Source: Eutreptiella sp. 'Long Island Sound 2002'
Taxonomy: Eukaryota > Protista > Euglenida
Length of the DNA stretch: 64,000 bases
Assembly (NCBI GenBank): GCA_964036045.1
Contig: OZ038378.1
Span: 25,296,001-25,360,000 of the forward strand
Reading direction: 5' to 3'
The notes under the pieces are model-generated. The model was not told the origin of the DNA. It did no database searches and was given only the letters and a program-made list of their open reading frames with translations. Shown in pieces: positions 3,751-53,561 of this stretch. The stretch's first letter is position 1, and every line of letters starts with the position of its first letter. Made by a program: the position numbers and the translations under genes.

Positions 3751-5169
3751 TGCTGTACGAGGATACTAGCATAGTCACACATGCAGCAAAAGAAAAATCG
3801 CAATGTGCTGGTGGTGCAGAAGCGGTGGGAGTCATGCCAATGCACTTCAGAACGCCAGATGACATGCAACATGCTCGGGCTTTAGATCTACATACGCAGG
3901 ACATTTAGCAGCCAATAGCTGGATGTGGCCGTAGGGCCGCCCGCAACTGCCCACGGTCTGCCCATGGCAGCCAAGTCCCGTCCCAGCGGGATGTTGTGCG
4001 TGGACGCCTCGTCAACAAAGCTGAAGAGGAACCGAGTTTGTGGGTTCCCTAGAGCAGCCCCAAAAAGCAGCCTATGCCCGTTAGCAAACATCCCAGCGGT
4101 GGCAAACACCACACGGCAGCTATTAAGAGCATCGCTATGGTGCGCTTATAACCCGGGGTGTGCCCCACTCACTGTCCCACTCAAATGACCTAAGCTGAGG
4201 TGCGGCAGCAGCCCATTGGGCACGTAGGCGCAACCAGGGTGCCGGATGGTCGGCGAGCACCTGGTAGCGGAACATGTCATCACTGTAACACTCCTCATGC
4301 ACCCGTTGCAGCAAGTTGTGTACTTTTGCACCGGTGGATGCCGTCACCAACACGCATGAACGTGGGGGGTTGTCACCCTCAGGACCGCTCACCCTCTTGC
4401 CCTGATTGATGGTGCCAGGGTTAACAGGATCTGAGTTCTGGGCAACAACGTAGCCTTGCTGCCATAGCACGGCTTTGATGCATGCCACTAGAGTCTCCCA
4501 GCACCTCCGGTCATTGTTGTGATGCATGACTTGTCCGGTACTTGACATACAGCCAAAGCCTGCGAATTGTTCAAGCAGTGGCGTTCGACCAGGTGGTTAA
4601 GGATCTGCCGCTCGCAATCTCACAAGGGAGGCAGGTCCTTTGGTTCAGCCCGGATGTTTGCCTACAATTTGGACCATTTGGCACCTTGCTGGATTTCGTT
4701 ACACAAGTTGCAACAGGTAGCGGAGTCAGGGACAACCATGCACCAATACCCGCCGCTGAAATCGCCTTTTGCGTAGTAGTAGCACCGATCCACACATTGT
4801 CATCAGAGATGCCACCACCATGAACCCTTGCCTAGAAGTCCGGTTTCGAAGCGACCCAAGGCTCCGTGGCAACCCAGCCGTGCACCATGTCACCATCATT
4901 GAGCTCATATTGCCCCCCACCTGCAATCGTGAGGCCTAGTACGCTTGGGTGGGCACGTTCCCATCACCATCAAGATGAGGCCACCATCGCTCGAAGTCAA
5001 GGATCCTTTCTCTGCCGTTGTCTTGTGCGCATTGGGCAGCGGCAACCATCTCATGGACAGTGTAGACCTCCAATGCCTTGGCCACGAACCTGTAACAGTC
5101 AAGCCAAGATTGGGTAAACCTTGACACAACATTGTCATCGGGCCCATAATCCAGGGCATTCTATGTGCA

Positions 5170-5720
5170 GCTGCTGTCCAAGGCCATTGGGGGCTGTGCG
5201 GCCAAGTCCACCGGCAGCGAGGCCGGAACTTGGACAGATGGCTGCTGTTCAGGGGCACACAGTGGTTGTGGTGAGGGTTGACCACCCGGTGCTATGGCCG
5301 AGTCAACCGGCGCCATAGCCAAGAGTTTGACAGATGGGTGCGGTTTAGGGGCACGCAGTGCGTGTGATGAGGGGGGAGCACCCTCTGGTGCAGCCGAGTC
5401 AACCGGCGCCGGGGCCACCACTTGGACAGATTGCTGCGGCTTAGGGGCACGCAGTGGTTGTGATGAGGGTTGAGCACCTATGGTGCGCCCAAGTCAACCG
5501 GCTCCAGGGCCGAAACAGGGGCAGACGACTGCGGCTCGGGGGCACGCAGTGGTTGTGCAGGGGGTTGCGCACCCTGTGGTGCGCCCGAGTAAACCGGCAA
5601 GAGGGCCGGAATAGGGGCTGACTGCTGGGGCTTAGGGGCACGCATCGATGATGACGATGATGATGAGGGTTGATCACCCTGTTGTGCGAATAAGTCAACC
5701 GACGTAGGGAGCATGACGAA
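5170..5720 (-). repeat. Degenerate ~100-bp tandem repeats with Pro/Ala-rich coding potential
   Basis: GGGCACGCAGTGGTTGTG and GTCAACCGGC motifs recur. Minus frames give repeated PVD.A.P...P.P..LRAP peptides broken by frameshifts. Confidence 0.6.
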
Positions 5721-6589
5721 AGCCACACCACCGGGTGGTGGCGCAACATGCTGTGGCTTTTTCCCCCATTTGGTGGCGTTGGGGATTCGGGAATCCAAGG
5801 CCTTGACCAGGAGTGAGTGGCTGAGACGAAGTTTGGTCGACGCCCGCAAGAGCTGGGAATGGAATTGAGTGCTCCGGCTCGAGGGGCACAGAGTGGCTCA
5901 TATATGTATGGTCGCTTAGCGCTAGGGCTTGGACCACAACCAACTGATGCGGCTCAGAGGCACACACTAATGAAACTAGAAGCGTGGGGAGAGGGTCAGT
6001 TCTGTGGCCTACAACGCTAGGGTCGAGGCCGCAGACCAAAAATCTACACTTCGGAGGTCTAGTGAGGCAAATACAACTGTTCAGTATAGAAAAACACGGA
6101 GGAGTGGCATGGAGGCATGGAATGGCAGTTGACAGCACATAGCACTACATGGTCCATGTGCGCTTTGACATTTCCCGGCCCTTGGGGAAACAGACGTGTG
6201 CATGGCGAAGGATGCCAACCACAGCAGCCACGGCGCCAAGGCTGAGCCTATAAGCAAGTTTTGCTGCCTCAAGGCTGAGCATCACAGGCAGACATGCAAC
6301 ATACATTCACAACACTCATGAACCAATGCACCGCCCCTTCTCATATTTTATGTTGTAGCTCCCAAAAATAGGGCCCTGTGAGACTTTTTCGAGAACAAGA
6401 GCAGGGGCTCATTGAAGGGCATACACCCATCCATGATTCACTGCATGGGGTCTACACTAGTGTACAAGGGTTGCCGTGAATCCTTAAAGGGTGTCATCCT
6501 CTATGGCGACTAACGATAGAGACAACCTATAGACAGGACGATGTTGTCTTGGACAAGCATGTCATGATTGAGTCCCAGCAGGAAAATGT

Positions 6590-7760
6590 GTCTTCTCAAG
6601 GGGATGTTGGTACGAAACAGGGCCTAAGAAAAATATCTCTGCAGGGATCTGTGCCTTTGCACGAACCCAACACCAGCAACCCATCCCCACAGGGTGCCTA
6701 TACACGTCCAATAAGAATCCTTGAAGGGGATGCAACTGGGGTGGGGAACGTGAACCATTTCACCTACAGTCACAGCGTCACAGCTCACACTTCGGACTGG
6801 CTATACTGCCTCAAGGGTTAGCATCATGACCAATGCAAATGGTATCAATGGAATTGGGATTCACAAATAAAAACGTCATGGTAACAACAAGGACACCAAA
6901 CAAATGCGACAAATGGTGACAGACATATTTTCCATTTCTGGTTTGCCGTGTTTTTCTGGACAGGCCACAAGACATATTTTTTTCTTTGAACCTGAATTTA
7001 CTTGGTTGAATGGTGCCTCATGTGCTTTACGTGCTTTGCTTTCCTTTGCAGTCGATGTTTGTCTTTACATAGAAAGAGAAACGAATTGGAAAACACCACC
7101 TTCCCCCTCCTACTTGCATGAGCATTTCCAGAATGGTGCCACCCCTTTGAGATGTAAAATTTTGACACACAACAGAGCCCCTTCTCACATGTCTTGTTTT
7201 TGTGAATGAAGGTCGGATACACCTGGTGAGAAGTGATTTGAACCCCTCACGGACATCCCTATCGGTGGAAATGGAGTTTTGAAGCTGCCGCTATGAGGCA
7301 CTTAGAGGATGTGGTGGAGACTGGACCTGTCTCCCTGCTGATGGCGCGGCCCTTCTCAGCGCACGAAACACTGTGTCTCCCTATTGTGCAGTGCATTTAT
7401 GTGCTGAAGGATCCGCAAGGGGACGGGTAATGCTCAGTGCACAAAACGGTGCGTTTTTTGACCTCCGGGCCGACACAAAACAGGACCTAAGAAAAAGGTA
7501 CCTGTTGGGGTTTGTGGCATGGTACAAACCCAACATCCGCAGAGCACCCTACAGGGTGCACAAATGAATTGGATCATCACGGAAGGGGTTGCAAAGAACA
7601 CAACATGCAAAAAAAGGCAAATGGGTGGGCACATGCCACCTACACTCCACCTACAGCCACAACGTCACAACGGAGACTGGAGGCTGGCTATGCTCCCTCA
7701 AGCGTCAGCATCATGACCAATGCGAATTGTATCAATGGAATTCGAATTCACAAATAATAA
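6590..7760 (+). repeat. Diverged direct duplication (~6590-6870 vs ~7470-7760) with Cys/His-containing peptide
   Basis: TKQGLRK...YSHSVT..WLYCLKG*HHDQCKWYQW aligns with TKQDLRK...YSHNVT..WLCSLKRQHHDQCELYQW. Confidence 0.65.
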
Positions 7761-16949: not shown

Positions 16950-18050
16950 AAACTTTGCATGTGCCGTCCAAAAGAATACCACCAAAAAATGTTCGCAGAA
17001 ATGGTGTGAGCGTGTCGAAAACACAGGCGATTTTAAAAAAGGCGGGGGGGTGTTCCAAACCCTCCCCCACTGTCAGATTTCTGAGAACCCTTCCCCCCCC
17101 CCCTTGCAACAAGGGGGCAATCATCTTGTCGCCACCAAAGTGCAAGTGGACGAGCCCCTCCACCTCGACACACTCAGCCCGCTGTTGGAGACCTATGTGT
17201 CAGATACAGAACAGCCAATTGAAGACTTGCCGACACACTACTCAACACATATTGTAGCGTAGGGTGGCAATCTCTTATTCCCATCTGCCGGGGGAGCGTA
17301 AAACACAGCATCTCCCACCCACTATCCCCCGAGTATCAACAAAGAAGTCAAAAAGCAGCGGCTATTTTACGCCTGTTATTGCAAAGCACATCGGTGACGT
17401 TTGATCACAGTAGTGGCTGGCGGTCAACGTATACCTCTCCCAACCGAGTGGAGGTAAGGGCGGCACAATAAACACATTACTCCTCCCCCCGGAAGAGGAT
17501 TTACGTTTCGAAACAGAGTAGGTGCATTCTAGGACATGGACCATTGCACCAATGTCCCCTCAAAATTCTTGCAGCACGATGTGGATGCTGCTATTTGTGA
17601 GCAAATAATGTCAAGGGAGCCAAAAAAATTTCATGGCAATCAAGCCTAAATCTATGGCGGTGGCGCCCTAAAATTTTACGGCGCTAGAGCCACAAACCGC
17701 ATACTAGGTTTAGAGAAGCAGCCCCACTTGAGTAGCATATACCCCTCTCATTAGAACAGAAGACCTTAATATCACTAGCATACAACTATATATGGAAAGT
17801 GTGTTCCTCCAAACTTTATACGTCGAGGACATTGTTGAAGATGCCCTCATTGGAGGTCCGTGCAGAAGATTGGTGCTGTGGTTCGGGAGTGTATTGCATC
17901 GGGACAAAAGATCCGAAGAAGTGTGGACAAACCTTGTGGAACAGTGGCCAAGACGGGTTGGCCGTCGTGGCACCCGATGGGTGACAACTTTTCCCTGGAG
18001 GTTGTGGACATGCTTCATCTTCCTGAAAGCATGGGTGTGTTCCCTGGAAA
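16950..18050 (-). pseudogene. Possible decayed CCHH-type transposase fragment
   Basis: VEGLVHLHFGGDKMIAPLL resembles the second catalytic-Asp motif (lFlgGD.k) seen in family B (ELFIEGDQPFM). Confidence 0.3.
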
Positions 18051-18539
18051 CCCACGTTAAAGTGAATATGGTTTGATATCTGGGTAAATATTAATACGTT
18101 AATCGGAATATTGCCTATTTTGGAGATGCTTTTGGCGGTGTTTGGGACACACCCCATGGGGTGCCTTGCGCGTCTGCCTGCCATTTTCCGCCGAGGGGGG
18201 GGCTTTTACCCCTGTGGATGTACAAAAAAATTACAACGGTGCTCCGCATTAATATTTGCCTTTAACTTTTCCACTAACATTTCAAATATTAAAAATCAAG
18301 CGGGCGCCGGCATTAATGTTAAACAAGCACATGTTAAATAGTTTTCGCGAAAAATTAATCCTCCTCATACACGCACAAAAGGGTGCACCCATACCTTTTG
18401 TAAACCCACTTGGGGTGCCTATTTCTTACACCTTTTGTGACCCCTCCTTGGGGTGCCATCACATGTCGCTCCATCGCTTTGCTTCTTATGTCCAAATCGC
18501 CGGGGATTTTAAATGGAAAATGCCTAGGAACGTGCTCGG

Positions 18540-32684: not shown

Positions 32685-35600
32685 TGTACCTGCGGCTCAC
32701 TGGTGGCTAAGTGGAAATGTGAAGTTGGGGCTCATTTGGGGCTCAGTTGTGCATTGCGATGTCTTTGTGCTTGTTTGTTGTGCGTTTTGCATGCTCGGTA
32801 ATGTGCATTTAATGTTTTTAGAAGTTTTAGATACTCACTTGGTCAAGGTTCAAGGTGGGGGGTACTTTTTTTGGCGACGGCTCAGTTGACTGAGCGCCCG
32901 ACTGAGCCGTCACTGAGCCGTCACTGAGCCGGCTCACTGAGCGCTCACTGAGCGCTCACTGAGCGCGCCAAATGGCTCAGTGAGCGCTCAGTGAGCGCTC
33001 ACTGAGAGCTAATTGGGGGCTCACTCAGGGCTCACTCAGGAGTTTCTCCCCCTTTCCGCCCTCTCTTCCCACCCTTGCTGGCCCACACTTCACCCTTTTC
33101 ACACCAACATTGGTCCGCATTTCTCACCACGTCTTTTCTCCAAGAACTTGAGCGTGCATGCACACATACATACTTGCATACATGTACCCGTGGCGACAAA
33201 CATACAAACATCCAAACACACACACTTCGTCAGGGACACAAATATCCAAACACATACACACACATACACCATACACACGTCCACACACACATGCACATGC
33301 ACAAATTGACAACCACATTCATTCTTGTGTGCAATTATCTTGCGTGTACATAAACACATGGCCACATTGAACCATGTGAAGTGAAGGGCTAGGGAGAGAT
33401 GGTTACGGGGTTGGGGTTTGGGGATATGAACCTAACCATTTGCGAGGGTGTTCCTTGTTGCCTCATGACAATGGCACCCCCCCCCCCCCCCAGACACACA
33501 CACACACACGGGCGCGCGCGCCATGAAGCACAAATAGGGCACAGAGGATATTGCTCGCTTTTGTGAGGTTGATCATACAACCATCGTGACCTACACCATG
33601 ACACACTCATTCCCCTCCGTCCTTATCCCCCCCCGTCCCCTTTTGCCATGCCTGATCCCCCCGCTTACCCCATGCCAACCCCTTCTCTTATCTTGCCTGT
33701 CGCGTCCCCTTGCCCAGCCCTTGCCATGCCTTCCCTATTTATTGCCATGGCATCGAGTGCATGATGGTGGCGGCAATGACGATGACCTTTGCAGGTATGT
33801 TGTGCTAGTGTGTGTGTTCGCGGGTGTGTGCTTGTGCCCATGCGTATGTGCGCAAGTGTGGATGGTTTGTTCCCTCTTGGTTTCTCTCATTTAGTGTGTT
33901 TGTATGTATGTTTGTGTGTGAGTCGGGGGGGGGGGGGGGGTTGCTTGGATCGATGCATGGGTGAAGGTGTCCTTGTGCGTCACTGTGAGTGTGTGACTGC
34001 ATTCTTTGGTTTCCGGTTGTCTAGGTTTGTTTGCGTACGTGGATTCGTGAATGTGTGTACGCGCAGGTGTGTGTGTGTGTGTGTGCCAATGTGTGTGTGT
34101 GTGTGTGTGTGTGTGTTGCAGCTTTTGCGGCTGTTGTTTTGGATCCTGTTGTTGGTTTTGGTGTTGTGTGGCATAGGCTTTGATTGTGTGCGCATAACAT
34201 TGTGTTTGTGGCTGCAGATGCAGGTATGCTTGCGTTTGTGGTTGTGGCTGTGGTTCTGGGCTTGCGTGAGGTTGTTGCCATGGCTGTTGTGGTAGCTGTC
34301 GTTCTTGGTGTGGTTATGGTAGTGGCTGTGGTTGCGGCTTTGCTTGTGGGTGTGGGTGTGGGTGTGGGTGTGGGTGTGGGTGTGGGTGTGGGTGTGTGTC
34401 TGCAAGCTGTGTTGTGTGTGGATTTGGTTGTGGTTGTGTCAGTGTGTGTGGCCCTGGCTGTGGCGAAGGCTGCAGTTGCAGCTTTCACTGTGGCTGCAGC
34501 TGTTCTTTGGGTGTAGCTGTGGGGGGGGGGGGGGTGGTAAAGGACTACAAAGAGGGGGGCTGAAATCACCATCCACCCCCTCCCAAACAAGACCGCACCA
34601 AGTTTACAGTGACATTGTACAGTGACAGTGTACAATGACAGTGTATAGTGAGAGCATACAGTGCGTGTGGAGTGACAGTGTAGAGTGCTAGTATAGAGAC
34701 TTGGGCGTTGTGGCGGACGTACTGTGCGTGGGGATACATTCTATGAGACCTTGGGGAGTACAGTGTACAGAGTACAGTGTACAGTGTACAGTGTACAGTG
34801 ACAATGTACAGTGATAGTGTATAGTGACAGTGTGCAATGGCAGTGACAGCGTACAGTGCCAGAATACAGTGTACCATGTACAGTGACAGTAGATAGTGAC
34901 ACCATTGACAGTGTACATGGACAGTGTACAGTGACAGTGTACAGTGACAGTGTACAGTGACAGTGAACCATGAGTGAGCCCTCACTGAGCGCTCACTGAG
35001 CCATTTGGCGCGCTCAGTGAGCGCTCACTGAGCCATTTGGCGCGCTCACTGAGCGCTCACTGAGCGCGCGAAACGGCGCAGTGAGCGCTCAGTGAGCGCG
35101 CCAAATGGCTCAGTGAGCGCTCAGTGAGGGCTCACTCATGGTTCACTGTCACTGTACACTGTCATTGCACAGTGTGTATTGCACACTGCACACTGCACAC
35201 TGTGTATTGCACACTGCACACTGCATACTGTGTACTGCACACTGCACACTGCACACTGTGTGTTACAAATTGCACACTGCACACTGCAATGCACACTGCA
35301 CACTGTAATGCACACTGCACACCCTGTAATGCACACTGCACACTGTGTATTGCACACTGCACACTGCACAGTGCACCGTGTGCAGTGTGCAATACCCAGT
35401 GTGCAGTGGCACAGTGCACACTGCGCAGTGCACCGTGTGCAGTGTGCAATGCCCAGTGTGCACCGTGCAGTGTGCAATACACGGTGTGCAGTGTGCATTA
35501 CACAGCGTGTAGTGTGCAGTGTACACTGCGCACTGCACACTGTGTACTGCACACTGCACACTGTAATGCACACTGCACGCTGTGTATTGCACACTGCACA

Positions 35601-38600
35601 CTGTAATGCACACTGCACACTGTGTCATGCACACTGCACACTGTGCATTACAAACTGCACACAGCACGCTGTCATGCACACTGCACACTGTGTATTGCAC
35701 ACTGCACACTGCACACTGTGTGTTACAAATTGCACACTGCACACTGCAATGCACACTGCACACGGTGTATTGCACACTGCACACTGTATACTGTGTATTG
35801 CACAGTGCACACTGCATACTGTGTATTGCACTGTGTGTTACAAATTGCACAACGCACACTGTAATGCACACTGCACACTGTGTAATACACTCTGCACACT
35901 GTGTATTGCACACTGCACACTGCACGCTGTGTATTGCACACTGCACACTGCACACTGCACACTGTGTGTAGTGTGCACTACACAGGGTGTAGTATGCCGT
36001 GTGTGATGTAATCCACACGGCACACCGTGTAATGCACACTCCACACTGTGTCATGCACACTACACCCTGCACCGTGTGTATTGCACATTGGGTATTGCAC
36101 AGTGCACCGTGTGCAGTGTGCAATACCCAGTGTGCATTACGCAGGGTGCGGTGTGTAGTGTGCAATACACAGTGTGCAGTGTGCATTACAGTGTGCAGTG
36201 TGCAATTTGTATTGCACAGTGTGCAGTGTGCAGTGTCCAATACACAGTGTGCGGTGTGCATTACAGTGTGCAGTGTGCAATACACAATGTGCAGTGTGCA
36301 ATACACAGTGTGCAGTGTGCATTACAGTGTGCAGTGTGCAATACACAATGTGCAGTGTGCAATACAGAGTGTGCAGTGCGCAGGGTGCAGTACACAGTGT
36401 ACACTGCGCACTACACACTGTGTAATGCACACTGCACACTGTGTCATGCACAGTGCACACCGTACAGTGCAAGCATTTGGGCGCTCAGTGTGCAGTGTGC
36501 AATACACAGTGCGCAGTGTGCATTACAGGGTGTGCAGTGTGCATTACAGTGTGCAGTGTGCAATTTGTAACACACAGTGTGCAGTGTGCAGTGTGCAATA
36601 CACAGTATGCAGTGTGCAGTGTGGAATACACAGTGTGCAGTGTGCAGTGTGCAATACACAGTGTGCAATGACAGTGTACAGTGACAGTGAACCATGAGTG
36701 AGCCCTCACTGAGCGCTCACTGAGCCATTTGGCGCGCTCACTGAGCGCTCACTGCGCCGTTTCGCGCGCTCACTGAGCGCTCAGTGAGCGCTCAGTGAGC
36801 GCGCCAAATGGCTCAGTGAGCGCTCACTGAGCGCGCCAAATGGCTCAGTGAGCGCTCAGTGAGGGCTCACTCATGGTTCACTGTCACTGTACACTGTCAC
36901 TGTACACTGTCACTGTACACTGTCCATGTACACTGTCAATGGTGTCACTATCTACTGTCACTGTACATGGTACACTGTATTCTGGCACTGTACGCTGTCA
37001 CTGCACACTGCACACTGCCACTGCACACTGTCACTATACACTGTCACTGTACATTGTCACTGTACACTGTACACTGTACACTGTACACTGTACTCTGTAC
37101 ACTGTACTCCCCAAGGTCTCATAGAATGTATCCCCACGCACAGTACGTCCGCCACAACGCCCAAGTCTCTATACTAGCACTCTACACTGTCACTCTACAC
37201 GCACTGTATGCTCTCACTATACACTGTCATTGTACACTGTCACTGTACACTGTCACTGTAAACTTGGTGCGGTCTTTTTTGGGAGGGGGTGGATGGTGAT
37301 TTCAGCCCCCCTCTTTGTAGTCCTTTACCACCCCCCCCCAGAGCTACAGCCTGAACCCAAAGAACGGCTGCAGCCACAGTGAAAGCTGCAACTGCAGCCT
37401 TTGCCACAGCCAGGGCCACACACACTGACACAACCACAACCAAATCCACACACAACACAGCTTGCAGACACACACCCACACCCACACCCACACCCACAAC
37501 CAAAGCCGCAACCACAGCCACTACCATAACCACACCAACAACGACAGCTACCACAACAGCCATGGCAACAACCGTACGCAAGCCCGGAACCACAGCCACA
37601 ACCACAAACACAAGCATACCTGCGTCTGCAGCCACAAACACAATGTTATGCGCACACAATCAAAGTCTATGCCACACAACACCAAAACCAACAACAACAT
37701 CCAAAACAACAGCTGCAACACACACACACACACACCTGCGCGTACACACATTCACGAATCCACATACACGCACGAACCTAGGCAACCAGAAACCAAAGAA
37801 CACAGTCACACACTCGCAACCACTCACACACAAAGACACCTTCACTCACGCATCGATCCATGCAACCCCCCCCCCCCCCCCCACACACACACAAGCAGAC
37901 ATACAAACACACTAAATGAGAGAAACCAAGAACGAACAAACCATCTATAGCTGCGCACATGCGCATGGGCACAACTACACACGCACGCAAGCACGCACAC
38001 ACGCACCCACACACATAATAGCACAACATACCTGCAAAGGTCATCGTCCTTGCCGCCACCATCATGCAGGTGATGCCATGGCCAAAAAATAGGAAAGGTA
38101 GGACAAAGGGGACGGGACAGGCAAGAGAACGGAAGGGCTACGCACGAGGGAAGCGGTGGAACGCAGCATAACGAAAGGGGAGGGGAGTGGACAAGGAGGG
38201 AGGGGTATCAATGTGTCATGGTGTAGGTCACGATGGTTGTATGATCAACCTCACAAAAGCGAGCAATGTCCTTTGTGCCCTATTTGTGCTTCATGGTGTG
38301 TGTGTGTGTGTATGGGGTGGGTGGGTGCCATTTTCATGAGGCAACAAGGAACACCCTCGCAAATGGTTAGGTTCACATCCCCGAACCCCAACCCCGTAAC
38401 CATCTCTCCCTAGCCCTTCACTTCACATGGTTCAATGTGGCCATGTGTTTATGTACACGCAAGATAATTGCACACAAGAATGAATGTGGTTGTCAATTTG
38501 TGCATGTGCATGTGTGTGTGGACGTGTGTATGGTGTATGTGTGTGTATATGTTTGGCTATTTGTGTCCCTGACGAAGTGTGTGTGTTTGTATGTTTGTGT

Positions 38601-39137
38601 GTTTGTCGCCACGGGTACATGTATGCAAGTATGTATGTGTGCATGCACGCTCAAGTTCTTGGAGAAAAGACGTGGTGAGAAATGCGGACCAATGTTGGTG
38701 TGAAAAGGGTGAAGTGTGGGCCAGCAAGGGTGGGAAGAGAGGGCGGAAAGGGGGAGAAACTCCTGAGTGAGCCCTGAGTGAGCCCCCAATTAGCTCTCAA
38801 AGAGCGCTCACTGAGCGCTCACTGAGCCATTTGGCGCGCTCAGTGAGCGCTCAGTGAGCGCTCAGTGAGCGCTCAGTGAGCCGGCTCAGTGACGGCTCAG
38901 TGACGGCTCAGTCGGGTGCTCAGTCAACTGAGCCGTCGAAAAAAAGAAACCCCCCCGGTCAAATCCTCTTGGCCTAGGGATTGGTGTCCCTTTGGGGACA
39001 TTCCAAAACCCCAACCCAACCCCGAAAGCCACAACTTTTCATATGAAACCCCTTGAAAAACACCACTTAGCCCCAAATGAGCCGTTTTAGCCCCAACTGA
39101 GCCCCAACTTCACATTTCCAAGTGAGCCGCAGGTACA
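32685..39137. mobile_element. 6,453-bp foldback-type non-autonomous TIR element, 2-bp TSD (TG)
   Basis: Ends TGTACCTGCGGCTCACT.../...AGTGAGCCGCAGGTACA, with TG at 32683-32684 and 39138-39139. Arms ~32.7-35.0 kb and ~36.86-39.1 kb are reverse complements. The centre is low-complexity CACTG/GCACACT repeat. Confidence 0.92.
34950..36900. repeat. GCACACT/CAGTGT satellite core bracketed by two GCTCACTGAGC hairpin blocks
   Basis: Local palindromes at ~34950-35165 and ~36665-36900 (CAGTGAACCATGAGTGAGCCCTCACTGAGC...GCTCAGTGAGGGCTCACTCATGGTTCACTG). The satellite strand switches several times between them. Confidence 0.9.
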
Positions 39138-42964: not shown

Positions 42965-44350
42965 CCCATAGGACCCCATAGGTCCCCATAGGCCCCCAAA
43001 GGTCCCCATAAACCCCCAAAGGCCCCCAAAGGTCCCCATAGGCCCCCAAAGGTCCCCATAGGCCCCCGAAGGTCCCCATAGGCCCCTATAGGTCCCCATA
43101 GGCCGCCATAGGCCCCCATAGGTCCCCATAGAGCCCCATAGGCCCCCATAGGCCCCCATAGGCCCCCATAGGCCCCCATAGGCCCCCAAAGGTCCCCATA
43201 GGCCCCCAAAGGTCCCCATAGGCCCCTAGAGATCCCCATAGGCCCCCATAGGCCCCCATAGGCGCCCCTTGGCCCCCATAGGTTTCTAAAGGTACCAATC
43301 GGCCCCCATAGTTCCCCATAGACCCCCATAGGCCACCATAGGCCACCACAGGCCGCCATAGGCCCCCATAGGTCCCCATAGACCCCCAAAGGCCCCCATA
43401 GGTCCCCATAGACCCCCATAGGTCCCCATAGGTCCCCGCGTGCCCCCATAGGCCCCCAAAGGTCCCCATAGGCCTCCAAAAGTCCCCATAGGCCCCTATA
43501 GGTCCCCATAGGCCGCCATAGGCCCCCATAGGTCCCCATAGACCCCCAAAGGTCCCCATGGGCCCCCATTGGTCACCATAGGCCCCCATAGGTCCCCATA
43601 GGTCCCCATAGGTCCCCACGTGCCCCCATAGGCCCCCAAAGGTCCCCATAGGCCCCCAAAAGTCCCCATAGGCCCCTATAGGTCCCCATAGGCCGCCATT
43701 GGCCCCCATAGGTCCCCATAGAGCCCCATAGGCCCCCATAGGCCCCCATAGGCCCCCATAGGCCCCCAAAGGTCCCCATAGGCCCCCAAAGGTCCCCATA
43801 GGCCCCTAGAGATCCCCATAGGCCCCCATAGGCCCCCATAGGCCCCCCTTGGCCCCCATAGGCCACCGTAGGCCGCCATAGACCCCCATAGGCGCCCATA
43901 GGCCCCCATAGGTCCCCATAGGCCCCCATAGGTCCCCATAGGTCCCCACGCGCCCCCATAGGTCCCCACGTGCCCCCATAGGCCCCCAAAGGTCCCCATA
44001 GGCCCCCAAAGGTCCCCATAGGCCCCTATAGGTCCCCATAGGCCCCCATAGGCCCCCATAGGCCCCCATTGGCCCCCATAGGTCCCCATAGGTCCCCAAA
44101 GGTGCCAATAGGCCCCCATAGGTCCCCATAGACCCCCATAGGCCACCATAGGTCCCCATAGACCCCCATAGGCCCCCATAGGCCCCCATAGGTCCCCATA
44201 GGCCCCCATAGGTCCCCAAAGGTCGCCAAAGGTCCCCATAGGTCCCCATAGGCCCCCATAGGCCACCATTGGCCCCCATAGGTCCCCATAGAGCCCCATA
44301 GGCCCTCATAGGGCCCCATAGGCCCCCATAGGCCCCCAAAGGTCCCCATA
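42965..44350. repeat. 10-bp minisatellite GG(C/T)CCCCATA (~135 units)
   Basis: Direct inspection. It generates the spurious MGAYGGLWGP ORFs. Confidence 0.97.
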
Positions 44351-44354
44351 AGGC

Positions 44355-44990
44355 CCGGATGGGGTTCCATCAAATATTTGGGGGCTGTACACCCCAAAAA
44401 TATTTGACAGATGGGGTTCCGTCAAATATTTGGGGGCTGTGTACCCCCAAAATATTTGACGGATGGGGTTCCGTCAAATATTTGAGGGCTGTACACCCCT
44501 AAAAAATTTCACGGATGTGGTTCCGTGAAATATTTTGGGGGTGTACAGCCCCCAAATATTTGACGGATGGGGTTCCGTCAAATATTTGGGGGGTCTACAC
44601 CCCCAAAATATTTGACGGGTGGGGTTCCGTCAAATATTTGGGGGCTGTACACCCCAAAAATATTTGATGGATGGGGTTCCGTCAAATATTTGGGGGTCTA
44701 CAGCCCCCAAATATTTCACGGAACCATATCCGTGAAATGTTTTCGGGGTGTAGACCCCCCAAATATTTCACGGATGGGGTTCCGTGAAATATTTGGGGGG
44801 TCTACAGCCCCCAAATATTTGACGGATGGGGTTCCGTCAAATATTTGGGGGCTGTACACCCCAAAAATATTTGACGGATGGGGTTCGGTCAAATATTTGG
44901 GGGCTGTACACCCCCAAAATATTTCACGGAACCACATCCGTGAAATATTTTGGGGGTGTAGACCCCCAAAATATTTCACGGACGGGGTTA
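44355..44990. repeat. ~52-bp hairpin minisatellite (~12 units)
   Basis: Unit GGGGTTCCGTCAAATATTTGGGGG(C/G)T(G/C)TACACCCCCAAAATATTTGACGGAT with stem CCGTCAAATATTT/AAATATTTGACGG. Confidence 0.93.
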
Positions 44991-45279: not shown

Positions 45280-46000
45280 CTCCGATTCCAATTTTGTTGT
45301 GCCAGGCATACCTCCCCCCCCCCCGGGGGGGGGGGGGCATTGTAGGCATGCTTTAGGATGGCGTGGAGGCTCTCAACGACATCCGCGCATCCCGCACCCC
45401 GTCCGACCCCAAGCCGCACCGCCTTAGCCACCGCCCTGGTTAGGACCGCCATAGCCCCTTTGTGCTCTTGAGACCAAACTACCTCCCCATTGGCGTGGCA
45501 TTGAATGCCCTCCAGCGATCCATGCGAGCCCTGACCCGGAACACAGGGCAACACGAAAATGGTTGGCATGCATGGAGACGGGTGCGGGTGACGCTGCTGG
45601 CATTTGCCGCACAAGGGGACTGGGGACGTGGGGCCAGCCAACTCACGGCCCATGTGTACTCAAGCCCCCTTCTTACGTGGAACATCTGCTTCCCGGTGCC
45701 CTTACCAAGGCCGGGCAACAGCAGGAGTGCAAGCACACAAGCATCATCGATCCCGGTGTGCGACAACAACTCCGATGAATCACACAGAAGATGTCCTTGG
45801 AGTTTGAAGACAGGAACATATTGGAGGCCCTTAGAGCACCTCGTGGAACACCCCGTTGCTAAGGTGCCACGCAATGTGCCAGCAAGCCATGTGCAGAGCG
45901 CCGTTCGGGTTCGTCTAGTTGCCTTCAACAGGCGCTGCAACCTCTACGACTACCACAAGCACCCAACACTTTGCCAAGGTACGATTGGCAACAACAATGT
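45280..46000 (-). pseudogene. Family-B transposase C-terminal relic
   Basis: CADVVESLHAILKHAYN matches ADVVESLNAILKKVYN at ~26.0 kb. Confidence 0.65.
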
Positions 46001-46790
46001 GCTTCCGAGGCCGCACGGGAGCACATCCCCAGGCATCAATGCGGGTAGTGCGGCGCAAACTGGGTTGAACATGTATTAAATTCTACCCTTCAAATGTGTG
46101 TGTTATGGCGACTTCCCCCTGCACCTGTATTGGAGTTACCCAAACGCTGGCGGAATTCTGCAATTCACTGGACAGTCGATCGGCCCATGCGCTTTTGCGA
46201 CAAGATAAAATAGACCTGGGCTTGGCGGACGAAGCGCTATATCTTTTGGCAGCCGCAAGGCCCCCACGACATTGCGAGCTGACCTACTTTGAACTCCATG
46301 GACAATGTTACGGTTGAAATGGGTCGGCCTTGGGCCTGCAGGAAATGCGAGTGTGCCTCTAGACCTGTGGTCTCTATGGGCACATCGTGACTTCTTTCGT
46401 GTGGGGGCACACGCAACTTCTTAGCCCCCAATGTGGTGCCTCAAAGCGGCTGTCATGCTAAGTACCCTTTTCCACGATCTTAGGCGTCACAAGTTGCCCA
46501 CCCCCCACCTGGCGCTATGGCCCACGGAAGTCCATGTTGTAATGAGGGGGAAAGTATGTGAAAAGGGGTGTTATTTTTTGGGTACCCAAACCCCCCTGGT
46601 GGCAACATGCAAAAACAAGGTGTGTATTTCAAATATATGCCATTATTTGCATTTCTGGAAACACACAGATTTTCAAAATAATGACATTCAATCACCAAAA
46701 TATAGTGTTGTTTTACATTTAGACCACTGCATTCCAGTGTGTGGGGGGGGGGGGGCTGCCTATTTTTCTCTCCCCTTTGTTCGAGGTTGA

Positions 46791-47858
46791 TCACAGAACC
46801 CCCCTATACACCACAGATGAGGGAACCCCAAACATACCTTTCATTGAAGCACACACTTCCACTTCCTTGAACGTACCCAGTGCGGGATGTAGTCCACGCT
46901 TTTCCATGGCTGCCATGGCGTCTACTGAAGGAAGACCCACAAATTTCACCAAACGCCCAACGCCACCCCACCGTTTGGCAACAGCACTCTGCACAGGAGA
47001 ACATGTGGAACACAGAAGCTGGCCGAAATTTCGGCCAGGTCGATCGACAAAACCGAATTAATACATGAAACACACCACAGTGCCTTCCTCGGCAGTAACA
47101 CCACACTCTTCAAGCATAACAGTAATGTGATGGTACAGGGTGTACTCATTGGCATCCTCATCCTCAAGCCTATCCAGGAGTAGGGACATTCGCTCCGATG
47201 TGGTGGATGCTGAGCCAGCAGTGGTCTGGATTTGATGTAAGCCTGCAAGCCGGCGCCTAGTCCGCAGGGGGCAGTCCTGTTTGACTTCATAACCACCAAA
47301 TACCAGGGTCCAATCCGGAGTCTCCATATTTTTCATCTCAAATTCAGTCTTGTGTTTTTGGGCAGCAGTGTAAACATGCTGACCCCCCAACAGAACCCAG
47401 CGAGTGGCTGTGCAACAGGAATATTCGTAACAGCAGGGTCGAAAATTCAGACGCGAAAACGGTACTATCGAGAAGAATACCACAACACACATACGAGTGA
47501 CTTTATAAAAAAGAAGATCCTGGATGTAATCCACAGGCGGGGCTGCCTTCAGATCGTCGTAGCGGCGTTGCACGCGATCATCCGAAATCCTACGGACCTG
47601 CCCAAATTTTCGGTCGTGGTCGATAATAATCTGATCCCACCGAACCTTTATTTTCGTCGTTGACGTAACCAAGTCGGATAACTTGATGGAGGATGATGAA
47701 TTTTTCTTTGGTGCGGCCTTAGGCTTCTTTTGAAGTCCCTCTGTGCTCGCCTGGTCCTCTTGAGACTGGGATTGCACTTGAGATTGCCCATTGTCTGCTG
47801 CAGGCTCACCATCTGGCGAAACAGCCATGTCCTGCGATACCCCTCCAGGCTCGGTCAT
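46791..47858 (-). CDS. ParB/Sulfiredoxin-fold protein with possible HTH (spliced: 47858-47495, 47407-47076, 46988-46791; ~297 aa, 3-prime end uncertain)
   Basis: GQVRRISDDRVQRRYDDLKAAPP...DLLFYKVT^PTRWVLLGGQHVYTAAQK resembles the ParB N-domain (QPR...l..si...Pi.v...y.ii.G.hR..A). Later STTSERMSLL and TV^SAVAKRWGGVGRLVKFVGLP are reminiscent of the ParB LnpiE helix and HTH region. Removing two GT-AG introns keeps the frame. Confidence 0.75.
46989..47075 (-). other. 87-nt spliceosomal intron 2 containing one palindrome copy (47019-47038)
   Basis: GTGTGT...TCTCCTGTGCAG, phase 0. Joins ORF 47058-47924 to ORF 46791-46994. Confidence 0.75.
47408..47494 (-). other. 87-nt spliceosomal intron 1 of the ParB-like gene
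   Basis: GTATGT...TCCTGTTGCACAG, phase 1. Removal deletes the odd hydrophobic/Cys insert MCVVVFF...CCTA from the ParB core. Confidence 0.8.
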
Positions 47859-47977
47859 AAAATAAAGGGCTACAAGGCAACATTTCATGAAGGGGAGAGT
47901 TCCCAGATAGCAAATAACAAGCACAGATCAACCAAAAAAGGACCAAAACGGACTGCCTGACAGGAAATTCGGATAAC

Positions 47978-48136
47978 CTGGCCGAAATTTCGGCCAGCAC
48001 TGCTCTGCATGTCAAACCACTGTGTACAAATACCATTCTGAGAGGCTGGCCGAAATTTCGGCCAGAACCTTAAGTCATTTGTGTTCTGGGGGTAGCCATA
48101 TGACAAAACAACAAGTCTGGCCGAAATTTCGGCCAG
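47978..48136. promoter_or_regulatory. Array of 3 perfect 20-bp palindromes upstream of the ParB-like gene
   Basis: CTGGCCGAAATTTCGGCCAG at 47978, 48046 and 48117 (period 68, 71) with non-identical spacers. The regulatory or binding role is inferred. Confidence 0.7.
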
Positions 48137-48228
48137 AAAAACACGAAACAGCAAATGGACACACCAAAATCACTGGCAATGCGTGGCAGAACCCATACCA
48201 CAGTGACAAACACAGCTGCAAACAGAAA

Positions 48229-50439
48229 TCAGTCCCAATCCTGGGTATCCACACCGATGTGTTCCGCCTCATCTAGGGCTTCAAAGGAGGCAACGCTGTC
48301 TGCATCACAATCAATATCCTGGTCACTATCACAAGAGTCGACAGCAATGGAATCATCAAGGGCGGGGGGGGGTACTGGGCGGGGGGGGTCCGGGGGGGGT
48401 ACTGGGGGGCCTCTGGCTCGGGGCTTCGGGGGTGGCTTTGGGGGCAAGGCAATTCCACTAGGAGCAGCAGCAGCAGCAGCAGGCGGTGCACGGTTGGCAG
48501 CGCGAATAGAAGCATGTGCAGTACGCAACACCCCTTGCTCGGCAGCAGTGCGGGCAGGTGCATTTGTCTGTAAAAAATCCTCAACACCCTCAGGAACCCT
48601 GGTACGCGCAACCAGATTTTGCATTGCATGCAACAGAACCACTTTTAAACGGTCTGTGGTGATTCGTGTCCTAGACATGGTACCGGGGAACGTCAAATCC
48701 TCAACTGCATCCAGTCTTCTCACCTCAACTTTATAGTCCGGAACGGGAACACAAATGGGCAGGCTCTGTGTATGGGCTGTCAAGATGAATTGTTTAAGAT
48801 TGGCAGAGAACATTGCCACGGATCTCTCAGTCAGCACACCACGCAAAACTTTCTCTCCGGGTTGGACAAGGGGAAGTGTCAGAAATAAATCAGACGACTG
48901 TTGGACACTAGTACAGGCGGTGTTGCGGCGACAGTGGGCTGAGAACCGACTCAGAAGTGCCTCACCCAGCTCCTCAGAGTGGATACACCCTAGGGAGGCG
49001 GAATGCCACTGACTCCAAAACAAAAGAGCAACGGCGGTGGTTTTCACATACTCCGTGGTTAACTGTTCCTCGGGCTTTAGGATGTTCAGCATGAGCAGTA
49101 GGGACATCTCAAGTGCCTGCTTAGCTACAATACCGGAACCTGCCCCCCGTCCCTCCCAGTTGCATTCACGAACCAAAGTCGCAATGCTGAAAGCAGCTGG
49201 ACAGTATGTGTACAGCAAAGCCTTAAGGGCTAATAACATACGCAAACCCTTGCGCTGAATGGGTGTCAAGTCCCGCTGGCTATTGAGCAGGGAAGTGACG
49301 CGCTCATCTAGTCTGCCTCTATTGGACGATGTGGCTAGCATGAGTCCAAGCAACGTCTTCTCCATATGGATGACCTTGACCTTGCGAGGGAGGATAGACC
49401 CAACCTGAAGGCTGTTCCCCTGCTCCAAAAACTTAATGAACGGCAGGAACGCCCTGTAGATCAATTCAACGCAATACTTATAGCTATGCCATACTCCGTA
49501 CACCAAAGGAAAACCCAACAGTAATTGTGGTACATTCCAGGGAACATAAGCAGCACCATAACACAGCTTAAGTGGGGCAAAGTGTATTTTCATGTCCACA
49601 AGCAGCGGAACACAGTGTCTGGTGCGGTGTTCCACACATGACAAATCAACCACGAGTTGCAAAAGCTCTTTGTGTGTGCCGGAGCGGAGCTCAGACAGGA
49701 AAAAGGGTCTCCAGTTGAGGGAACGAACATCTTTTCTGGCAATATCCAAAGGAGCACGAACCCAAACTCTCTGAATACCTTGGTTGGCAACATCAATACG
49801 ATCAAACAATGCTCTGTGTGAGCGAAAGATGTCATCTGCAACCTTTGGTACCCTGGCCTCAATTTCGGCCAGCTCCGGCAGACCCCGGTATGCAGGTAGG
49901 GCAGTAGTGTGCAAAACAGCAACAGCTGTACAGTTTAGGGTTAAGTCGGGTGAATGGGGATCAGCTCCCGACCTGTAACGCCTCAGGTTATCAAACCATA
50001 TACAAACTTGCCTACGGTGCATGGTGTTCCACAAGTTGTGTGCTGCTAGTCCAGCACGATGGTGAATGGACTCCTGCTTAGTGTTACACTGACCAAGGAC
50101 TCCTACCTTACAGCGTTGGCGGCAAGACATAATACCCCAGTTGTAACCAGACCCACAGTTAGAGTATGGGAGGGCCATACGGCGCAGCAGGCAGTATAGG
50201 GCATGGAACTGTGACAAAGATGTCATGTACCATCGTGGGGGCTTCTTCTCGGTGGCGGCGGCCTTCAACTGTGTCAGGGAGTGCCGGCTCCTGCGATTCT
50301 TCCGCAACAAGAGGCAGAATTGCAAAAGCTTTTGCAGAGTCCCACCACGTAATGCATTTCGCAACAGCCCTTTGGCTGTAGTAGCAAAAGCACCAGTAAC
50401 TGCAGCATGTACAACATTGACAGTAATAGCAAAAGACAT
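48229..50439 (-). CDS. Intact 736-aa putative DDE transposase (Academ/DUF6589-like)
   Basis: Motif order WFD150N...LLVD282MK...YGVWH318...SEELGE493A fits the DN / D / G.wH / E pattern of Academ-type RNase H-fold transposases. Pro-rich then acidic tail. Lies between TIRs. Confidence 0.65.
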   Translation of the reverse strand: MSFAITVNVVHAAVTGAFATTAKGLLRNALRGGTLQKLLQFCLLLRKNRRSRHSLTQLKAAATEKKPPRWYMTSLSQFHALYCLLRRMALPYSNCGSGYNWGIMSCRQRCKVGVLGQCNTKQESIHHRAGLAAHNLWNTMHRRQVCIWFDNLRRYRSGADPHSPDLTLNCTAVAVLHTTALPAYRGLPELAEIEARVPKVADDIFRSHRALFDRIDVANQGIQRVWVRAPLDIARKDVRSLNWRPFFLSELRSGTHKELLQLVVDLSCVEHRTRHCVPLLVDMKIHFAPLKLCYGAAYVPWNVPQLLLGFPLVYGVWHSYKYCVELIYRAFLPFIKFLEQGNSLQVGSILPRKVKVIHMEKTLLGLMLATSSNRGRLDERVTSLLNSQRDLTPIQRKGLRMLLALKALLYTYCPAAFSIATLVRECNWEGRGAGSGIVAKQALEMSLLLMLNILKPEEQLTTEYVKTTAVALLFWSQWHSASLGCIHSEELGEALLSRFSAHCRRNTACTSVQQSSDLFLTLPLVQPGEKVLRGVLTERSVAMFSANLKQFILTAHTQSLPICVPVPDYKVEVRRLDAVEDLTFPGTMSRTRITTDRLKVVLLHAMQNLVARTRVPEGVEDFLQTNAPARTAAEQGVLRTAHASIRAANRAPPAAAAAAPSGIALPPKPPPKPRARGPPVPPPDPPRPVPPPALDDSIAVDSCDSDQDIDCDADSVASFEALDEAEHIGVDTQDWD

Positions 50440-50510
50440 TAATGCTGAGACAAGAAAACAGTTATGTAGGAGTGTATGGTGTAATACTCATGAACAACGA
50501 CAATTGCAAG

Positions 50511-50811
50511 CTGGCCGAAATTTCGGCCAGGTGTGTTCAAAGGGGAAATAATTGCTTACATGTTCAAAAATAGGAAAAGCTGGCCGAAATTTCGGCCAGA
50601 CGGCCCAAAAACCAGAATATAAGTGCTTGAATAGTGAACAGACCAAAAAGCTGGCCGAAATTTCGGCCAGCCCTAAGAAAAATGAAATTAATCATGCCTA
50701 TTCACCAAGAAACCAAAAAGCTGGCCGAAATTTCGGCCAGAAGGGTCAAAAACTGCATATACACATAGTTGTTTGCAATGTTACCCAAAACCTGGCCGAA
50801 ATTTCGGCCAG
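50511..50811. promoter_or_regulatory. Array of 5 perfect 20-bp palindromes upstream of the transposase
   Basis: Copies at 50511, 50580, 50651, 50721 and 50792 (period 69, 71, 70, 71) with 49-51-bp distinct, A-tract-bearing spacers. The role is inferred. Confidence 0.7.
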
Positions 50812-52149
50812 CTTCCGAAAAACGTAAAATACAACACACTAGAAGACGGGGATACACAAGGCTAACACATCAACACGTATTTCAACGGGTGTCACACAGC
50901 TCTGCCAACAACTTTGGTCACATACGTCAAATAACATACTCAAAGTAGAAATGTAGAATATTGTCAAATCGCGCGTATACGGGGTCCTAGAGGGTGGGCA
51001 ACTTGTGACGCCTAAGACGATGGCCTCCTTGTGGAGAAAATTAGGAGGCAAATGCACAAGTCTTTGTAAAGTAGCCGGCTCCATGAATTACGTGATTGCG
51101 TGCTGCCTTTTGGCTTGCACCAAGCCCTTGGCTTGGTCCAACATTTGATAGCGCACATATTGTCAACCCTGGTTTTTAGTTGCTGCAACAAATTGCGAAC
51201 GGGGTAGCACAAGTGCCGGCAGATGCAAGCTATATTAGTAGCCCTCAGATAATTGTCACACCAATCCAATCTTTGTCATAGATTGCGAAATGTTTGAATC
51301 TATTAGGTCCTAGAATTGCGCCATCACCCAATGTGGTGGCAAATTTCGTCCTGCATTTTATCTCCGCCATTGTCATTATAAAAGCTCTCAACGTGTGTTT
51401 CGCAGGATCACTTGGATAGGGTGCCTTGGCAATATGTTCAGTCCTTTTTTTGGCGGGTGCACGGCCATGGCTTATTCATGGCCCATTTTGGGCACCATGT
51501 ACACCTCCGGCGGTTTCATCCGGCTTCTTGGAGCGCCATAGCTAGGGCCTCTAGGGGATGGAAGCATTTGGAACCCAAAACGCCGCTTGTACGTATATTT
51601 TGTGATGCTGCGCCTGACCCACACTAACAAGGTGCCTACCTTTTGGGTTTGTGGGGGCCTTTGGGGCCCAAACTTTGCAGGGTCCCGGTCTTGGTGATTC
51701 GCAACAGCCTGTTGAACTTTATGGGGCATTTTGTGCACTGGATGAGATGCATAAATATAGAGGAAAATATTTACGATTGGTTCTGAACAACAGGGGCGCA
51801 TTGGCCCTACTTTGCAATGATAGGACCGCCTCGCGCCTTGCGGCGCAACACGGAAGATTACGATGTGGTGCCCATCGCTAAAGACCTACATTAAAATCAA
51901 TATGGTTAAAAATCAAATTTTTCAATTCTGAATAAATTCAAGGGGTTAAAAATGAGGTTGCCAAAAATTAACATGTTAACGCGATCTTGGGTCATTTGCA
52001 CTGCGTTGTTTTTGTGCATATTGTGCCCCATCAGGTGGCTTGGTTGATCAAGTGGTGCAAAACAGGATGCTAAAGGGGTTCCATAGTCTCTAGGGTAGGT
52101 AAGTAGGCCCACACACCCCTCCCTAGTGCCCCCACGCACCCCACTCCCA

Positions 52150-53561
52150 ACAACCCTTTCCCCTTGTGCAACTCTTGTTATGCCTCTCTCTTGTGACACA
52201 CTGCTCAAGCATAATACGGCGCTCACTCGTTTGAGGGGGGCCAAGAGTTTGCGTGACCCTTTGGTATCAATACTGCTTGGTAAATGGGTGGCCTCATTCC
52301 CTTGGGCAAGGCCTAATGGTACAAGGCGACCGAGGTTGCCCAACTCCGCCTCATCTGCAACAAGCAAGTAGAGGCCCTTAAGCAATATGCCTCCATCCTC
52401 TTCCCGGCACCCGCTTTGACTAGGCTACTTATGGACTTGAATGCCCCCAAAGGCGGCTTCTGGCATGTGTCGTAGTTCATGACTCGCCGGGGGCACACAT
52501 ACCCCGCCGTCACGGGCCTCCCATTCCCCCGGCCCGTCCCCTCGCCGGACCACTTCACGGACACATGGAAGGAGCAAGCCAAGCCGCTTGAGCTAGAGCC
52601 ACCCGTATCCGTTGCGGATCCCCCTACCACTGCCCGCTTTTGGCTGCTGCAATCTTGGGCCCGCTGCATCCAATCGCGTGCATCGCTGGTGGACACCATC
52701 GATTGGAAGTGGTCCCTCACTTTTATGCTCTGCGGGGATGCATACCCGTGTGCTAGAGGTAGTTGGGCCCAACTATCCATTGGGCTCTTCAACCACGGCT
52801 CACGGGGCCGCTCACCCGCCTATTTGTGGGTGATTGGAATGGTTGTATGCGGGGACAAAAACATGGCCACCTTAGCTACTATATGGGCCAAGAACTTGCA
52901 ACAACCATGTTGCTCTGTATTAATTTTTGCGTTGATATCCGGATGTTAATATTCAATATTTGGAAGATAGTAACACCGACAAAAAAATTGACTTAACATT
53001 AATGTGAAAAATTTAATGCAAAAAATAACCCACTCTTTTTTGCAGGTATTGCAAGCTATTAATCACAAGATCCATTGGGCAATGAGCTCGGTGCCCAATG
53101 AGTTGTTCATCGAGGGAGACCAACCCTTCATGTGATGCCTTATTGGCATGTCAACAACGCCCATGGTGGGCTCAATTTACAATATGGGTGTGTCCGACAA
53201 GGGTGTGGTGGCCTGGGTGTATGTTGCAAGCCGGAGCACATTACAGGGCGAGGCGGAGGGCAATCACCGCTATCAAGAGACGGGCTGCAACTTGGAGAAT
53301 GGGGGTTGCATACGAGACCCCCACATTGTGATGGAGCCATGCTTGGTCTTCCTATGCATCCTCCATTGTTGCATGGCCATTGGACCAATCCAAGTGGCGT
53401 TCATTGAGTCCTGCATGGGGAAAATTCCAACGGAGAACGCGGTGGCCGTGCAACGGGTGCGAAACTGGTCGCGCACCGGTGTTCAGCTGGGTGCCTCGGC
53501 TGCACCCGACGGTGAGGAGTCACAGGCATTGTTCCTTGAATGGGAGGCAATTGCGCCACTA
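52150..53561 (+). pseudogene. Family-B RAG1/Transib-like transposase, 5-prime part (continues at 56991)
   Basis: LTFMLCGDAYP (D1), ELFIEGDQPFM (D2) and FLCILHCCMAIG. The AT-rich probable intron ~52900-53045 ends TTTGCAG. Cut at GCGCCACTA by the 53562 element. Confidence 0.8.

Follow-up and report, generated by a model that had tools for sequence, protein, structure and literature searches.

Lineage-specific palindromes of an abundant two-gene DDE transposon in Eutreptiella are candidate docking sites for an element-encoded protein

Every copy of the 20-bp palindrome CTGGCCGAAATTTCGGCCAG in the 64,000-nucleotide stretch of Eutreptiella DNA analysed here (the window) is part of one left-truncated copy of a high-copy, cut-and-paste DNA transposon. 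We consider it probable that these palindromes are lineage-specific docking sites for a sequence-specific, and probably dimeric, DNA-binding protein that the element itself encodes. The best evidence that they would be functional, symmetric sites in duplex DNA is a base change mirrored on both half-sites between two related transposon families, together with a site geometry that both families have kept. A previous, sequence-only reading of this locus had not recognised the arrays of palindromes as transposon parts; they lie within a repeated element bounded by TIRs and TSDs.

The window holds nine exact copies of CTGGCCGAAATTTCGGCCAG and one copy with two mismatches (Table 1), and none of 100 dinucleotide-preserving shuffles of the window held a match. 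The repeat geometry described in the sequence-only reading, exact 20-bp copies set 69-71 bp apart, is therefore real. The same holds for its second, three-copy array of similar period (68 and 71 bp), for the position of each array 5' of one minus-strand gene, and for the hairpin proposed for each copy, which as DNA of a single site has an 8-bp stem and folds at -8.7 kcal/mol. Spacers between array sites measure 48-51 bp. The five-site array lies 72-372 bp upstream of the ATG (50439) of a 736-aa ORF on the minus strand, and the three-site array occupies the interval between the stop of this ORF (48229) and the start of the next (47924). The single site at 47019 probably sits in an intron of gene 2, the second gene of the element. 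The degenerate copy in the transposase coding sequence is fixed in the family consensus, and no equivalent was found in the corresponding ORF of the sister family described below.

Table 1. Features of the transposon copy in the window (positions are those of the whole window)
Feature	Position	Strand	Remarks
Left-truncated transposon copy, 4,161 bp	46856..51016	-	2,375 bp missing beyond 46856 relative to other copies
TIR, 25 bp	50992..51016	-	Reads CTTAGGCGTCACAAGTTGCCCACCC from outside; unrelated flank beyond
Five-site array	50511..50811	.	Starts 50511, 50580, 50651, 50721, 50792; spacing 69, 71, 70, 71 bp
Three-site array	47978..48136	.	Starts 47978, 48046, 48117; spacing 68, 71 bp; between transposase stop and gene 2
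Single palindrome site	47019..47038	.	Just downstream of the 288-aa ORF, within gene 2; equals L033:3038 in a full copy
Degenerate palindrome copy, 2 mismatches	49853..49872	.	Inside transposase coding sequence (peptide LAEIEAR)
Predicted DDE transposase gene, 736 aa	48229..50439	-	RNase H-like core and alpha-helical insertion domain in AlphaFold2 model
Gene 2, first part	47058..47924	-	One 288-aa ORF as read, running through a probable intron

A DNA search of the genome with window positions 45500-52500 listed 28 further copies, whose similarity is confined to 46856-51016 and amounts to 98-99% identity. These copies have a sharp right boundary and, with the exception of a group on contig 7, the flanks beyond it differ from copy to copy. 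On the left, the other copies continue for 2,375 bp to a TIR, and the window copy is therefore truncated on this side; no other part of the element is found elsewhere in the window. Full copies are about 6,536 bp long and have a perfect 25-bp TIR at both ends, with a 5-bp TSD in seven of seven cases. A first look yielded 3,233 candidate copies in the assembly (2.28 Gb in 2,317 contigs). The palindrome itself occurs about 9,300 times genome-wide, always clustered with the spacings seen in the window.

Several further observations concern the surroundings of these copies. The window copy ends at 46856 against unrelated DNA (46796-46855) that finishes in ...CACACA; a deletion or another insertion are possible causes. 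On contig 7, between 12.55 and 15.49 Mb, seven of the copies listed have one common right flank (GATATAACATTTGTGCC...); here the element was copied along with its surroundings, by segmental or tandem duplication, and not by separate insertions. ORF density in the window is low and its tandem repeats are many. At positions 42965-44989, about 70 tandem copies of a 20-bp unit span 1.4 kb and lead directly into 12 copies of a 52-bp unit with its own inverted repeat, and positions 32685-39137 form a large nested inverted structure of short tandem repeats (11-bp TGAGCGCTCAC-type units, and 7-bp and 13-bp CACTGTA-type units) arranged in mirror order on two arms. The Euglena gracilis spliced-leader sequence, used as a search pattern, matched the genome 5,458 times, against 0 matches for a reversed control, which places the host in or near Euglena.

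A full copy of the element (L033) shows how the sites are distributed. Its 14 palindrome sites comprise a left-end group of three, a pair within gene 2, probably in introns, a further three in the intergenic region, a degenerate one within the transposase ORF and a right-end group of five. The far-end sites, downstream of gene 2, are at positions 928, 998 and 1231. On the full element, the terminal sites occupy the stretch 206-506 bp inside one end and the stretch 428-750 bp inside the opposite end; the five-site array is the subterminal cluster at 206-506 bp, upstream of the transposase gene, and its sites start 206/277/347/418/487 bp from the terminus. All ORFs of the full copy are on the minus strand, and the element consists of two genes, one for a predicted DDE transposase and a conserved second gene.

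The sequence-only reading had called this geometry CRISPR-like and had entertained, as its less favoured option, an array of acquired spacers or small guide RNAs. The geometry alone does fit, with short identical repeats and 48-51 bp spacers of similar length, and a comparison of spacers between genomic copies is the check that the reading itself had named. We aligned 20 copies of the element, each 98.9-99.5% identical to the consensus, and found the same set of spacers in 20 of 20, diverged from the consensus by 1.5%. Nothing has been acquired, and because every copy carries the same spacers the guide-array reading is refuted. The host, moreover, is a eukaryote with a 2.28-Gb genome in which this locus is one of thousands of transposon copies and the palindrome has some 9,300 sites. 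No Pfam family, cas included, matched the eight window ORFs scanned, and a scan of the whole window against Rfam at the gathering threshold gave no match. A CRISPR-like or other acquired-spacer array is, in our judgement, next to impossible. Plasmid iterons were also considered and rejected: the sites are palindromes inside a chromosomal transposon, and the ORF scans found no Rep-like family.

The same alignment bears on the earlier claim that selection keeps the repeats invariant. Divergence from the consensus among the 20 copies was 1.1% in palindrome columns and 0.86% in all other columns, with 0.86% also in the transposase ORF. In inserted copies, then, the palindromes decay at the neutral rate. 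This is expected of dead copies and is uninformative on function in the active lineage; it equally gives no positive sign of constraint.

Could the arrays instead be functionless leftovers of a tandem duplication, in which a unit of about 70 bp that contained the palindrome was multiplied, with the sites still identical since the family is young? The spacers of the five-site array, which had been described as distinct and largely unrelated, are indeed distinct, but they keep 45-51% identity to one another in register (p 0.002-0.04 against shuffles), and TRF reports a period of 70 bp with 78% matches. This residual identity marks the array as the product of an old tandem duplication of a unit of about 70 bp, and copies of the element, at about 99% identity to the consensus, fit a young family. 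However, within the consensus element the palindromes are identical while the spacers have diverged to near chance, and isolated sites lie far from any array. Furthermore, the sister family and more distant families keep the same palindrome design, and the sister family keeps the positions as well. We regard the proposal that the arrays are mere remnants of duplication as very unlikely.

The spacers had also been said to hold A-tracts in similar places, with phased DNA bends as a possible consequence. A-tracts (A5 at +7 to +12; AAAAG or AAAAC before the next site) do recur in four of the five units of the five-site array, but they are absent from the three-site array and from the sister family. 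The proposal of phased bends is not supported, and simple in-phase bending was rejected. The 70-bp period corresponds to 6.7 helical turns, so that neighbouring sites face different sides of the helix; A-tracts are confined to a single array, and the spacing differs in other families.

Comparison with related transposons is more telling. This family and four related families in the same genome each have their own palindrome of 20-22 bp. The transposases of the related families are 26-46% identical to the window transposase, and the three families checked for their ends have CTTAGGC termini and a 5-bp TSD in common. Beside the window family, with CTGGCCGAAATTTCGGCCAG at spacings of 68-71 bp, stands a sister family (L034-L037; transposase 45% identical) with CTGGGCGAAATTTCGCCCAG at spacings of 69, 69 and 111 bp upstream and 70 bp downstream; its TIR starts CTTAGGC and a 5-bp TSD was seen in one copy. 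The 672-aa family (L038-L041; transposase about 32% identical) has GTGCGCGAGGCCTCGCGCAC at 57, 185 and 225 bp. The L027 element (1794-6772; about 27%), with a TIR that starts CTTAGGCGG and the TSD AGAAG, has eight copies of the 22-bp palindrome TTTGGGCACTGCAGTGCCCAAA, 241 and 38 bp apart among other spacings, and the L042 element (about 26%) has GTTTCACTGTCAACAGTGAAAC at a spacing of 114 bp. The period of about 70 bp is limited to the window family and its sister; the others have spacings such as 57, 114, 185, 225 and 241 bp. Transposase lineages in this genome include groups of 672, 713, 718, 737, 762 and 768 aa.

Two additional loci concern these relatives. In the L042 copy (G000:C7:10628834-10632151), an L027-type element with a TIR starting CTTAGGCGGCTC lies inside the transposase ORF, at position 2205; this is a nested insertion among lineages of one superfamily. 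In the window itself, a weak match to the transposase profile at 17732-18073 on the plus strand (E 3.5e-7, profile positions 18-92) is possibly a fragment of another family in the same superfamily.

The sister palindrome CTGGGCGAAATTTCGCCCAG differs from CTGGCCGAAATTTCGGCCAG by one change, mirrored on both half-sites, as would be expected if the site were read by a symmetric dimer. The positions of the sites correspond closely. The first sites start 206/277/347 bp from the terminus in the window family and 207/276/345 bp in the sister family, which has a fourth site 456 or 466 bp from the terminus and, in a place comparable to the three-site array, two sites at 70-bp spacing. The TIRs of the two families are 68% identical, the 180 bp between TIR and first site are 31% identical (p 0.27), and the first two spacers, at 29-39% identity, agree no better than chance (p 0.08 and 0.27). 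Because the distances match while the spacers have chance-level identity, site position and spacing have been kept while the intervening DNA was replaced. The sequence-only reading had proposed protein-binding sites under selection for their sequence and spacing. The mirrored change and the distances conserved across chance-level spacers lend indirect support to that reading.

Mirrored changes and conserved positions would also fit a cruciform signal. The palindromes may act by structure, either as DNA cruciforms or hairpins during transposition or as transcript hairpins or duplexes that drive processing or give rise to small RNAs. Each site folds into a stem of 8-9 bp at -7 to -9.6 kcal/mol, folding of the array is well beyond that of its shuffles (z = -10.8), with neighbouring sites paired, and the mirrored changes keep the pairing. 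However, palindromy runs through the centre of the site (AAATTT here; GGCC and TGCA in two other families) and includes the 4 central bases, which are unpairable in a hairpin. A palindromic centre is required by a duplex dimer site and is unnecessary for a hairpin. In addition, one sequence is present at every site of a family, which is beyond what pairing needs, and Rfam offers no match. Action through structure seems to us unlikely.

Alternatively, the palindromes could be mainly promoter or operator elements of both genes, read by a transcription factor of the host or of the element, with their proximity to the ends being incidental. Both window arrays lie directly upstream of a minus-strand gene, and the sister family likewise has an array upstream of its transposase gene. 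This arrangement does not extend to all sites, as the three far-end sites of the full copy (928, 998 and 1231) are downstream of gene 2 and single sites lie inside gene 2. Moreover, the distance that is kept is the one to the terminus (206/277/347 versus 207/276/345 bp) and not the one to the ATG, which is 72 bp in the window family and about 97 bp in the sister family. Recognition by a host factor would leave the separate palindrome of each lineage unexplained. We hold a mainly promoter-based role to be rather unlikely.

We therefore return to docking sites as the best explanation. From the patterns described above we infer protein binding, the candidate binders and what binding may do. Each palindrome would be bound by an element-encoded dimeric protein, for which the candidates are the transposase, through its N-terminal residues 1-120, a small helical domain in the structural model, and the product of the conserved gene 2. 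Subterminal clusters at fixed distances would load several dimers beside each end, and the loaded dimers may mark the DNA of the element as 'own'. Bound in this way, the clusters could help the transposase to find and pair its own ends for cutting. As each array in the window closely precedes one of the two genes, binding there could also regulate both, and would allow the element to feed back on its own expression.

On the strength of a structural model, we interpret the 736-aa protein as a DDE transposase whose RNase H-like core is interrupted by a helical insertion domain. Among 1.84 billion representatives, a profile search recovered 1,408 cluster representatives related to it. In an alignment of 50 sequences D150, D232, D282, E360 and E493 are invariant, and an AlphaFold2 model from 50 relatives reached a pLDDT of 87.5 and a pTM of 0.83; a first model from 13 sequences (pLDDT 51.7) was set aside. 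The best structural matches are all DDE transposases or integrases: VIA-align gave Z scores of 10.2 for P element transposase (288 residues aligned), 8.3 for Hermes, 7.4 for Tn5, 7.0 for ISCth4, 6.2 for Transib and about 6 for retroviral integrases. Foldseek ranked the same DDE proteins first, weakly (E 0.005 or higher), and returned no match at E 0.001 or better for the pLDDT 87.5 model. The plus-strand G runs at window positions 48340-48410 encode the proline-rich, low-confidence C-terminal tail of this minus-strand gene.

The transposase belongs to an unnamed, unclassified DDE group, and it has no NCBIfam-type match. Pfam matched nothing in the eight window ORFs or in all ORFs of the full copy, even at E up to 5, and gave scattered chance matches only for 13 and for 50 transposase relatives; searching PDB sequence profiles with the transposase profile returned nothing relevant. 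For hAT, P and Transib domains there was no match to Pfam or PDB sequences, and the similarity is one of fold only (Z 6-10). Word searches with the transposase, gene 2 and the 50-sequence alignment returned unnamed ENA proteins only, a cluster look-up likewise yielded no names, and the foreign relatives P0045 and P0043 had no match in this genome at E 1e-100. In a protein-language-model atlas the transposase falls beside basidiomycete DUF6589 clusters (29 of 30 matches, score 0.92, 183 shared features). The DUF6589 HMM (PF20231) has two matches in the whole genome, both on a sister family of this transposase; these matches (18.7 bits, E 8e-4) span the second and third invariant aspartates and are below the 27-bit cut-off, and neither the window protein nor 50 diverse relatives match. 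A remote relationship to DUF6589 is likely, short of membership in the family. Academ elements, which have a TSD of 3-4 bp (AcademX) or 9-10 bp (AcademH) and encode an XPG nuclease or a helicase (PMC10045372), were considered and rejected: the TSD here is 5 bp in three families, and the ORFs of the full element have no Pfam match to an XPG nuclease or helicase.

Homologous gene calls for gene 2 diverge in frame after a conserved first block (...LLFYK), and this change of frame suggests an intron. A motif, LGG[Q/A]H, is conserved. With tblastn, pieces of gene 2 were found in families whose transposases are 27-46% identical; in two cases, the sister family and the distant L027 element, they lie downstream of the transposase gene, with order and orientation kept. 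Judging from this conservation, gene 2 is part of the core of the element.

The many palindromes of the element recall ParB/parS systems, and the number of sites, 14 palindromes per full element, agrees with such a system. Gene 2 was searched exon by exon for a ParB domain. By sequence, profiles from Pfam, NCBIfam, PHROGs and PDB gave no ParB match to its pieces; NCBIfam and PHROGs gave low-complexity noise only, and PDB profiles searched with exon 2 gave nothing relevant. A genome-wide search with the ParB_N HMM (PF02195) found 10 matches, none of them in the abundant transposon, and the LGG[Q/A]H motif has no arginines and so does not correspond to the arginine-rich motif of ParB_N. As for a ParA ATPase partner, no Pfam family matched the ORFs of the element at E up to 5. 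The atlas lead from gene 2 to DUF3723 is weak (154 shared features), and no DNA-binding domain was recognised by sequence in the transposase or in gene 2. Most of the ParB_N matches, with true domain matches of up to 59.8 bits, are on small contigs, among them C1777, C1888, C1287, C1322, C999, C2159, C1295 and C1451, which may be bacterial or organellar contaminants or viral insertions.

A number of well-studied systems use comparable sites. The 12-bp TnpA motifs of En/Spm, the AAACGG repeats of Ac and the GTGGC repeats of Hermes are subterminal binding sites. As in the Eutreptiella element, many copies of one short motif gather at either end of a TIR element, no more than a few hundred bp from the terminus, and overlap the transposase promoter region, where they would load several copies of an element protein for end pairing and autoregulation. 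Here, in contrast, the site is a 20-bp perfect palindrome, occurs also between and inside genes, is spaced at about 70 bp and is specific to its lineage. In the KorB/ParB operators of plasmid RK2 and in bacterial parS, a private palindrome is read by a dimeric protein that the replicon encodes. The likeness lies in the repetition of one such palindrome across a mobile replicon, in promoters and between genes, although the KorB/parS systems belong to prokaryotes and are coupled to partition through a ParA ATPase, and the transposon has no match to a ParA or ParB family. With the P element, Hermes and Transib/RAG1, the transposase shares, in its predicted fold, an RNase H-like DDE core split by a large helical insertion domain. 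The TSD of Transib is 5 bp, the same length as the TSD here. Unlike P, hAT and Transib elements, to which it has no match at the sequence level, the present element has CTTAGGC... termini and two genes.

The closest parallels in algae are recently described transposons with accessory genes. In the red alga Bostrychia, the ParB-like accessory protein Plavaka PAG3 is found beside tandem inverted repeats (bioRxiv 10.1101/2025.02.11.637652), and in the brown alga Ectocarpus a Sola1 element has a ParB-methyltransferase and inverted-repeat arrays (PMC12477816). The authors of both studies suggest that such accessory proteins bind the very elements that encode them (bioRxiv 10.1101/2025.02.11.637652; PMC12477816). 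Like these, the Eutreptiella element is a eukaryotic DNA transposon with a conserved accessory gene and adjacent inverted-repeat arrays. In the algal proteins, however, a ParB domain can be recognised, as a fusion with an oxygenase or a methyltransferase, and the elements are of the Plavaka/CACTA or Sola1 type, whereas gene 2 has no ParB match by sequence and the transposase here is of another, unnamed group.

A bolder extension, which we consider possible but doubtful, is that each lineage has a code for recognising itself, made of a private palindrome and a ParB-like loader encoded by gene 2. The loader would nucleate on the roughly 14 sites and then spread, or modify DNA or chromatin. If this were true, a lineage could mark, protect or mobilise only its own copies amid competing relatives, and eukaryotes would have, in an unnamed DDE superfamily, an equivalent of parS/ParB or KorB operator networks.

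For annotation, the locus is a warning that repeats and spacers in a eukaryotic genome can be arranged much like a CRISPR array without being one. For transposon diversity, it adds a very abundant, unclassified group of two-gene DDE elements to the eukaryotic range, and links this group to fungal DUF6589 proteins, whose function is unknown. If the palindromes do dock a protein of the element, they would offer a clear-cut example from nature of how DNA-protein recognition co-evolves among rival transposon lineages, with five or more palindrome variants and a conserved site geometry available for testing.
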